A stretch of DNA of 63,730 nt, filler included, from Lenisia limosa (taxonomy: Eukaryota > Protista > Breviatea): the NCBI GenBank assembly GCA_001655205.1. It is 12 parts of 12 records of this genome, joined end to end, with 100 filler letters (N's around TTAATTAATTAA, not from the genome) between each part and the next. Parts side by side here need not be neighbours in the genome. Positions count along the whole stretch, not along the records: positions 53,906 to 56,712 come from LPNZ01003717.1; 11 more parts are not named here. One strand, 5' to 3'. The notes under the pieces are model-generated. The model ran no database searches, was not told the origin of the DNA, and saw nothing but the letters and a program-made list of their open reading frames with translations. Below, piece after piece: positions 53,906-56,712 of the stretch (positions are counted from its first letter, which is position 1; every line of letters begins with the position of its first letter). A program made the position numbers and the translations under genes.

Positions 53906-54011
53906 CAAAGTATAACAATCAGAAGAAAAAAGTAATTTGTCCAATTTAGAATTCGAGTATACATATATTCAACTGAACATAACATCAAAATACAAATATA
54001 GAGACAGGATT

Positions 54012-56712
54012 TTACTTTTTGGGCTTCTTTTTAGTCGTGGTTTTGGTGGTGTTCGCTCCTTCTTTAAGTAGTCGCTTACGGTTTGCCTCCAAGCTGGCTA
54101 TGTCATCGAAGTTGTCAAAAAGAACCTAAAATTGTCACCATTGACTCCCATTTTGAATGTAAAAAAGATGGCTTCATACCTTCGGCCCGGCAATGGCACC
54201 CATTTCTGTGGAGAATCTCTGATTTCGAGCTTTGTCTTCCTTCAAGTTGTCAACTGTAGTGATTACTTCGTCGCTTCGAAGGGTTACTACACGCTCGCCT
54301 GGCGTAAGGGGAATGAGAGCCATTGGTGTAATATTTTCTGTTATCGGTCCGACTTCTAAAACCTTGGTAACAATGTCGAAGATGGCTTTTGCTGTAACAT
54401 TGGATGCTTCATATTCTTGTGTTGAACAGAGGATTGTTGAAGCTCCAAGAACTTTCTTGAGAGTACTTGGTAAATCATTGCTTAAAAGAGTCGCCATGGA
54501 GGCCATACCTTCCAAAAAATGGTTTCCAGCTCCAATATCGTTCTGAACTCGCTCTTTGGCGGACTGCACCAGTGCGAATTGGAACTGTGTTGAACCGTAG
54601 GGCTGCTTCTCATTCAGCTTTGTGCGGAATTTGGCAACTTCTTTTATCTCAGCTTTGGGTTTGAACTGGGGGAACGGATCAATGCGGAGTGGGGTCATGA
54701 AGGCGGTACCAGGTGGGCTTTCGAGGTTGATCTTGGAATAAAGGCTCTTGAGGAAGGGAGGTGTGACAGCATTCTCACGGTATGGCAGACCAGGGTCATA
54801 AATTGAGCGGTCAATCAAGAAAGGGTTGTGACGTCCAGTCTTCTCGAAACCACAAGCCTTCATCGATGCTGCATAAACATCGGAGTCGACTTCATGAAGG
54901 CTCTCGGAGATAATACCGGCAACGTGGACATCTTTCACATCCCTTAGAAGTCAACATGTAATTTACCATTTCAAAGTATAGAGTCAAATTGGACAATAAA
55001 ATTCTCACAACACCAGGAATGAATTAATACTACAAATTGCGAAGCTGATGCTTACTTATTGCCGTGAACATTTTTAGAATCCTCCACTTTTTGTCTAAGT
55101 TTGTGGTTCACATGTGCATGATGGTATTGGTCACCAACCTATTGAACAATTAGTATCACAAGGTTAGTATGATTACTTAAAGGGTGTGCGCATCAATATT
55201 AATACTCTCACCTGTAGAAAATGAGATGTAAACGCAGGCTCGATGACAACAATGAGGAAGAATTTGTAGAGCGCGAGTGCCAGCACCTGTGGTGTGGAAA
55301 ACAAAAAATGCAACAAATTGACAATCATTCGATTTCAAACAATAGCATACCTCAGCTGAAATATGGATCCGAGCTCCCTCCATAAGAACAAGACCAATGT
55401 GGTCTGGACTGTGGTTAAACTTCTTTGAGATAAACTCCAGAAACTTCAAAACACTCATTGTGGAAAAATACGACGAGCCGTTGCATCCTATGAGTCGGCA
55501 AGAGTTTAATTTGGCAGCTCTAACGGCTTCGAAAAAGGGTTCGTAGATTTGAGGGGCATGGATTCTGAATTTTCCTTGAAATATTTGGCAACTTTGTCAG
55601 AAAACGGGTCTCCACAAGACATAATGGACACATCAATAGGGTCAACAATTGGGGCCTCACGCCCTTCCACATCTTTCATGATGGATTTCCCACCAAGAAT
55701 GATGGTCGCAGAAACATAGTCACCAGCTGCGGTTGTACATGATATGGCAGATCCCATCGGTTCGCCTTTCAGGGTTCTTAAAAACCTAGGACCAAAAGCG
55801 GTTTCATCTGCAAAATAGATATCTGCCGGGTCCATTTCGTATTCAGGGGTACTCTGCTTATAGGCGTCAAACAATTCTTGAATAATTCGTCCGATGTCGA
55901 TGGCATTTTGACCGCTTAATGCTCTTGTTTTCAAGATCTAGACAATCAGAAACTCTCCGACTAAATATGTACAATGTGTATAATATCGAAATAGTAGATA
56001 TAAATATGATAGACATATTAGTTTGTCAAATAATTGAAGTATAGTTTGTATTAGAACACAATGGTAGATGTTTATATATACGGGGTGTGATACAATGCCA
56101 TCATACAAAACAGAACACTAACCTTTTCTAACTCTTTTGACAGTAATTTGACAGACTCTCCTAGAGAATCCTGAGCTTTTTTCCAATAATGTTGCTCATA
56201 CGAAGTAGCTGATGTGTTGTAATACTCCAAAGCTGAATGGTTAATAATGAAATTGAGATGTTTGATGTTTTTTTGTTGTACAAATGAATACAATACAGGT
56301 TCGATTTTACTCACCTTCATCAAATCTTTCAATCTGAAAGAAGCTAGCAGCATTCAAAAGATGAGCAATTTGGGCATTTTTTGCCATTGTCATTCCGTAA
56401 GCTCCGTATGCAGCTTTTCTCTTTGCCTTATCTGATTTGGCAGCACCAACAGCTGTTGCTATCTCAGCAACAATATTATGTCCTGCATTTACTCCTTGAG
56501 ATTGACGGACGCTGCAATCAGGCTAAAATAGAATGAGAATTAACTTTCACTTAAATAATAATATTTATATTCTACAAATTTAGAATATAATTCAGCTCTC
56601 AAAGTATTCAATCTTGAAGGTTTAGTTTATAGATATCAAAACTAACCTGGGTATGTGAGAATCTTGGAGCATCCATATCTTTTCTTTCAGTATTGAATAG
56701 TTTCTTAATTTT
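54012..56712 (-). CDS. pogo/Fot1-like (DDE_1) transposase-derived protein, about 8 introns, 5' end possibly off scaffold
   Basis: DPADIYFADETAF (cf. pogo IYNxDETG), SCTTAAGDYVSATIILGGK (cf. C.xAxG..xPPxxIxKGK), GCNGSSYF, LVLMEGARIH, EPAFTSHFLQ|VGD (cf. PxHTSHxLQPLD), ASMKACGF and a basic C-terminal tail ending KKKPKK*. Confidence 0.75.

Follow-up and report, generated by a model that had tools for sequence, protein, structure and literature searches.

An intron-rich, pogo-like gene of Lenisia limosa with a putative D-E-D triad and a conserved C-terminal domain

Does the intron-rich gene with pogo-like motifs found in the genome of Lenisia limosa belong to a mobile element, or was a pogo transposase domesticated there into a host gene? 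The gene lies in one piece (positions 53906–56712, from LPNZ01003717.1) of the window, i.e., the whole stretch of 63,730 nucleotides that was analysed, and this piece defines the scope of the present work. An earlier note on this DNA had favoured a lineage-specific domesticated gene. The results described below point instead, with moderate confidence, to a low-copy, intron-bearing, and very divergent pogo-like transposon as the most likely reading.

The plus strand of the piece contains short ORFs only, and the minus strand consists of open stretches in alternating frames. The exon model was built from these minus-strand ORFs and from a reading of the junctions, and the exons were joined for the frame check and the residue count. 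The resulting gene, on the minus strand, comprises nine exons and eight introns, all of which are of the GT..AG type. The exons total 1965 nt, i.e., 654 codons plus a stop at 54012–54014, with no internal stop, which bears out the claim of the earlier note that about nine exons and about eight introns splice into one open frame. At its 5′ end the gene runs past the edge of the piece, and the predicted protein is at least 654 aa long. The introns range from 41 to 185 nt (54–185 nt for the seven other than the 41-nt one), with a GC content of 0.21–0.33 versus 0.32–0.47 for the exons. Rfam and tRNA scans gave no match.

In the direction of transcription, exon 0 (56647–56712) is cut by the edge of the piece and contributes 22 codons in a frame that is open from the edge to a donor, GTTAGT, at 56646. 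Exon 1 (56315–56522; 208 nt; acceptor TTTTAG, donor GTGAGT) encodes a helical-looking N-terminal region, and exon 2 (56123–56232; 110 nt; acceptor TTCAG, donor GTTAGT) is an open frame throughout. Exon 3 (55606–55937) carries the Asp of the ADET motif and the predicted strands β1–β3 of an RNase-H-like core. It is followed by a zone in which the coding frame shifts (55509–55605) and by exon 4 (55351–55564), in which an open frame with the Glu of LMEGARIH runs to the donor GTATGC. Exon 5 (55212–55286; 75 nt; acceptor CACAG, donor GTGAGA) is in phase 0 on both sides and has the motif TSHFLQ at its 3′ end, whereas exon 6 (55056–55138; acceptor AATAG, donor GTAAGC) begins with VGD, the third catalytic-type Asp. 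Exon 7 (54180–54942; 763 nt, about 254 aa) contains the CGF..G..P end of the transposase-like core and the conserved C-terminal domain. Exon 8 (54012–54125), a predicted exon defined by its splice sites and open frame only, lies downstream of a 54-nt GT-AG intron and adds 37 codons and the stop.

The junction between exons 3 and 4 deserves separate consideration. The coding frame changes there, and both frames are open for about 88 nt (55596–55509). A 41-nt GT-AG pair at 55605–55565, with an intron-like GC content of 0.32, would restore the frame as the shortest intron of the gene model. Such an intron had been proposed before, and it does exist, but it lies 17 nt away from the positions then given (55548–55588), and it is not unique, being one of 10 GT-AG pairs of 29–110 nt, any of which restores the frame. 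A 142-aa ORF running through the frame-break zone (P0014) is found without change on two contigs of up to 19,385 nt; a read error is therefore unlikely, although this record is compatible with both an intron and an old frameshift. The simultaneous opening of two frames over 55509–55596 is mildly unusual at 40% GC, and the 41-nt intron model gives no explanation for it.

The three putative catalytic residues are distributed over three exons. The Asp of ADET is encoded at 55808–55806 (exon 3), the Glu of LMEGARIH at 55380–55378 (exon 4), and the Asp of FLQ|VGD, a motif that spans the junction of exons 5 and 6, at 55132–55130 (exon 6). The first Asp and the Glu are 129 residues apart, and 36 residues were counted between the Glu and the last Asp, so that both the three motifs and the spacing of about 36 residues previously proposed hold. 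When the sequences were aligned by eye, the Glu occupied the position of the second Asp of pogo. Further collinear stretches, again judged by eye, are presumably pogo features as well: a β2–β3 segment ending in GGK and an NG..Y/W before the second acidic residue. The same applies to two stretches in the later exons, TSHxLQ before the third acidic residue and CGF..G..P after it, which we take to be resemblances to pogo. Altogether, six pogo-like motifs were found by eye to be collinear and in the expected order.

To our knowledge, no characterised DDE/D transposase has a Glu at the second metal-binding position. The replacement of the second Asp by Glu may weaken or abolish catalysis, a reasonable prediction from the sequence; if catalysis is impaired, the window copy may be inactive or depend on another copy. 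A 93-aa ORF with this Glu (P0015) occurs on a single contig, that of 19,385 nt. Pogo transposases have a DDxD triad with 29–59 residues between the last two acidic residues and are encoded by one or two ORFs (PMC7386202). The arrangement found here, D..E..36..D, fits this description in spacing, with Glu as the second residue.

How far the pogo assignment is supported by database comparison depends on the method. Single exons were used as queries for Pfam, NCBIfam, the PDB, and the ESM Atlas. Exon by exon, Pfam returned no match to DDE_1 (PF03184) at either E ≤ 1 or E ≤ 10, and with the same two thresholds no HTH domain was detected in exons 0–2, the N-terminus being cut by the edge of the piece; the absence of a recognisable HTH in the visible N-terminal part, as asserted in the earlier note, is borne out to this extent. 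In pogo transposases this N-terminal HTH DNA-binding domain is of the type CENP-B_N, HTH_Tnp_Tc5, HTH_psq, BrkDBD, or HTH_ABP1_N. NCBIfam likewise gave no match for the exons, nor did PDB sequence searches with exon 3 and with the exon 7 stretch. The ESM Atlas, in contrast, using features from a protein language model, placed exon 3 alone close to clusters scoring 0.94–0.95, and DDE_1 (PF03184) was assigned in 11 of the 30 nearest, with all ten of the best family-bearing matches agreeing on DDE_1. These scores are to be read against a calibration in which shuffled proteins reached 0.9 or more in 4–10 of 100 cases and a first hit of 0.95 in about 1 of 100. The description of the motifs as DDE_1-like is thus upheld by the ESM Atlas clusters of exon 3 but not by the exon-wise Pfam search, even with a threshold of E ≤ 10. 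Similarly, a pogo-type origin with many introns and a D-E-D triad is consistent with the results, whereas DDE_1 membership as such is without statistical support. From these sequence comparisons, a pogo-type RNase-H-like core is very probable, and the pogo/DDE_1 identity, without Pfam support in single exons, is likely.

Downstream of the core, exon 7 encodes about 250 aa that, in the alignment, are conserved across distant relatives down to 25–31% identity. Pfam, sequence and family-profile searches of the PDB, and the ESM Atlas revealed no relative of this C-terminal domain; in the Atlas, the best score for exon 7 was only 0.82 and fell on unrelated bacterial clusters, which were rejected. 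An AlphaFold2 model of exon 7, computed with an 11-sequence alignment, had a pLDDT of 52, with helices at residues 120–200 and most of the rest uncertain; the domain is accordingly predicted to be mainly helical. The end of exon 8 forms a lysine-rich basic tail, TKKKPKK, whose KKKPKK looks like a nuclear localisation signal. Two of the distant relatives described below, P0009 and P0010, likewise have basic tails at their ends, and the similarity of exon 8 to these tails was not significant.

The relatives of the gene were collected by an exhaustive HMMER search (phmmer) with the 258-aa open stretch at 54177–54950, which covers exon 7, against 1.84 billion cluster representatives. It retrieved 13 relatives (P0001–P0013), all of them ORF fragments of 48–278 aa from ENA metagenome assemblies; none is named, none has a Pfam domain, and none is annotated at full length. 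The closest, P0001 and P0003 on the 19,385-nt contig, are 98–99% identical to the window copy, the differences being two substitutions, a deletion of 3 nt, and a T6 run that is one T shorter and breaks the frame. This run, at 54516–54521 on the coding strand, is the site of frame loss in P0001, and a homopolymer error in an assembly is possible there. P0001 and P0003 may stem from a further copy or an allele, or may owe their broken frame to a homopolymer error; their contig may also be another assembly's version of the same locus. P0002, on a 52,002-nt contig, is 91% identical in the coding frame and switches frame near 54474. P0004, on a 21,411-nt contig, has a deletion of about 24 aa and is 79% identical by phmmer and 63% by tblastn (137 columns, gaps included). 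Both P0002 and P0004 read past exon 7 into intron 8 sequence, and because this intron sequence is kept, they are DNA-level copies, not retrocopies. P0005 and P0013 (4,620-nt contig) and P0006 (12,672-nt contig) are about 57% identical and fragmentary, and P0007–P0012 are 25–31% identical, some of them being intact over 230–280 aa. A further contig of this set measures 17,252 nt. None of the relatives above 60% identity is whole, each being either broken or a fragment. Copies other than P0001 and P0003 may belong to different organisms represented in the metagenomes.

Other searches added little to this set. A word-index protein search with the exon 7 stretch returned P0001 and P0002 only, and those with exons 3 and 4 returned only the window's own ORFs. 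Among JGI metagenomes, GTDB genomes, and viral contigs, no true relative was found at related loci; one viral contig (L001) was rejected as a relative because it shared a 9-mer, QELFDAYKQ, by chance. As an observation in its own right, this contig (L001:147-3365, IMGVR_UViG_3300019269_000231) is nearly filled by a 1072-aa ORF that has a GDD-type motif and looks like an RNA-virus polymerase.

Four of the distant relatives at 25–31% identity (P0007, P0009, P0010, and P0012) have ORFs that start within about 10 codons of the exon 7 acceptor (window positions 54914–54942). This hints at an intron 7 that would be old and shared with distant relatives. Intron 8 is absent from P0009 and P0010.

Pogo elements are recognised by TIRs and by a target-site duplication of TA (or TAA, TAAA), neither of which is visible in the piece. 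Within 53906–56712, only short, imperfect inverted repeats were detected, none of them convincing, and the 3′ flank on the minus strand (53906–54011; 106 nt, GC 0.26) contains no recognisable TIR end. The earlier statement that no TIRs are seen is correct within the piece, yet this absence means little, since the piece is cut inside the gene on the 5′ side and extends only 106 nt past the stop.

The relatives lie on different contigs and extend from nearly identical copies to broken, heavily decayed ones, a range that fits a low-copy transposon family and not a set of conserved orthologues of a domesticated gene. With moderate confidence, the piece would then contain the greater part of a single copy of a DNA-transposon gene that has introns and a low copy number, and the element would be a very divergent member or a close relative of the pogo superfamily (IS630-Tc1-mariner group). 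Its protein would consist of an RNase-H-like core with D..E..(36)..D, followed by the conserved C-terminal domain of about 250 aa and by a basic, NLS-like tail. The core would adopt a DDE_1-type transposase fold, and the copies would have arisen by cut-and-paste transposition. The earlier note named many near-identical, TIR-flanked copies as the sign of an active transposon; several copies, judged from their ORFs, are seen. Speaking against a transposon are the eight introns, as opposed to the one or two ORFs of pogo elements (PMC7386202), the failure of Pfam to detect DDE_1 in any exon at E ≤ 10, and the lack of a visible TIR or TSD, together with the possibility that the closest copy is a single locus assembled twice and that the others belong to different organisms. 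Moreover, the pattern of the relatives, judged from their sequences, suits a transposon family of low copy number as well as a gene family that includes pseudogenes, and the intactness of the window copy is compatible with a host gene too. That a pogo transposase was domesticated here into an immobile gene, maintained by selection for some new role, e.g., in DNA binding or at chromatin, is a possible reading that we hold with low confidence. Catalysis would have been lost or altered by the change of D to E, the C-terminal domain would be an addition, the introns would be host-like, and the broken relatives would be either paralogues that have become pseudogenes or the orthologues of other species. 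The frame that stays intact over nine exons, under a splice model with an ambiguous exon 3/4 junction, agrees with this, as do the eight introns, unusual among pogo elements, and the altered second catalytic residue, which may be compared with DN35D of the domesticated POGK (PMC7386202). The conservation of the C-terminal domain down to 25–31% identity in the intact long ORFs P0009 and P0010 also agrees with it, as does the start of several relatives' ORFs near the exon 7 boundary, a hint of an old shared intron. However, transposases too stay conserved across hosts, so that conservation alone cannot discriminate, and the relatives above 60% identity are all broken or fragmentary, which argues against conserved orthologues. 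Domestication has been taken to be marked by the lack of TIRs, an intact coding capacity under purifying selection, conserved synteny, expression, and a phenotype (Feschotte and Pritham, cited in PMC4231638). For the gene studied here, the only relatives are the 13 metagenome ORF fragments, among them frameshifted or deletion-bearing copies that are about 98%, 91%, and 79% identical, and the lineage-specific domestication proposed in the earlier note is not supported by them.

The frame break between exons 3 and 4 raises another explanation, namely that it is a real frameshift in a pseudogene of a transposon or host-gene family and that the apparent intactness arises from a short GT-AG pair bridging the break by chance. 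The 41-nt intron is indeed shorter than the other seven (54–185 nt), the two frames are open together for about 88 nt (55596–55509), frameshifts occur in other copies of the family, and with ten GT-AG pairs restoring the frame, finding one is unsurprising. Nevertheless, a dead copy is unlikely: the 41-nt candidate has canonical ends and an intron-like GC content, the other exons are free of stops, and the ORF over the break is unchanged on two contigs, which speaks against a read error and fits an intron and an old frameshift alike. It is very unlikely that the gene is not a transposase at all but an ordinary multi-exon gene of another family whose short pogo-like motifs arose by chance. The lack of any Pfam, NCBIfam, or PDB sequence match for the exons would be expected of such a gene, and scores of 0.9 or more are attained by 4–10 of 100 shuffled proteins in the ESM Atlas. 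Against it, the Atlas score of exon 3 was 0.95, a value reached by only about 1 of 100 shuffled proteins, and the DDE_1 clusters among the nearest agree with one another. Furthermore, the other exons supply five more motifs that follow the order of the pogo core with the spacing of the family, and multiple broken copies fit a mobile element.

Considered together, the present evidence indicates, on balance and with some reserve, a sparsely sampled family of transposons, and it does not demonstrate a domestication. A broader proposal is doubtful: that the gene represents an undescribed lineage of pogo-derived proteins, in which a D-E-D RNase-H-like core would be combined with a new, conserved C-terminal domain (about 250 aa) and with introns that are old and in part shared, and which would be either a host gene family derived from a transposase or an active transposase using Glu. 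If the pogo assignment is true, the range of the superfamily would be widened by a member too divergent for Pfam to recognise in single exons, one distinguished by the number of its introns, by Glu as the second catalytic residue, and by a conserved domain at the C-terminus. Whether a D-E-D triad supports transposition or marks the loss of catalysis would be revealed by the conservation of the Glu across the family together with mobility. The parts most worth following are this Glu and the conserved C-terminal domain without a known relative.

Among known systems, the closest counterparts by description are the pogo transposases and Mover, a family of pogo from red algae and Chromista in which all elements have DD36D and the DNA-binding domain escaped detection by hmmscan (Gao et al. 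2020, PMC7386202). The window gene shares with pogo and Mover the motif order, i.e., DET, a hydrophobic strand with an acidic residue and xxxH, TSHxLQxxD, and CGF..G..P. Its likeness to Mover in particular consists of the 36-residue spacing of the last two acidic residues and of an N-terminal DNA-binding domain that was undetected (here by Pfam, exon by exon, with the N-terminus cut), both compared by description. It differs from pogo and Mover in that the second catalytic residue is Glu instead of Asp, in that Pfam did not detect DDE_1 exon by exon, and in the conserved C-terminal domain of about 250 aa without known relative; the eight introns and nine exons further distinguish it from pogo, with its one or two ORFs. 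Domesticated pogo genes occur as single, syntenic copies, evolve under purifying selection, and retain recognisable CENP-B_N or HTH_Tnp_Tc5 together with DDE_1, whereas the relatives of the window gene are multiple and mostly broken, and its own exons contain no recognisable Pfam domain. A non-canonical triad is common to the window gene (D-E-D) and the domesticated POGK (DN35D; PMC7386202). Finally, the window gene resembles the domesticated CENP-B, JRK, TIGD1-7, POGK, POGZ, and Drosophila CAG in having an extra domain fused to a transposase-like core, a role taken by a KRAB domain in POGK, by zinc fingers in POGZ, and by a dimerisation domain in CENP-B.
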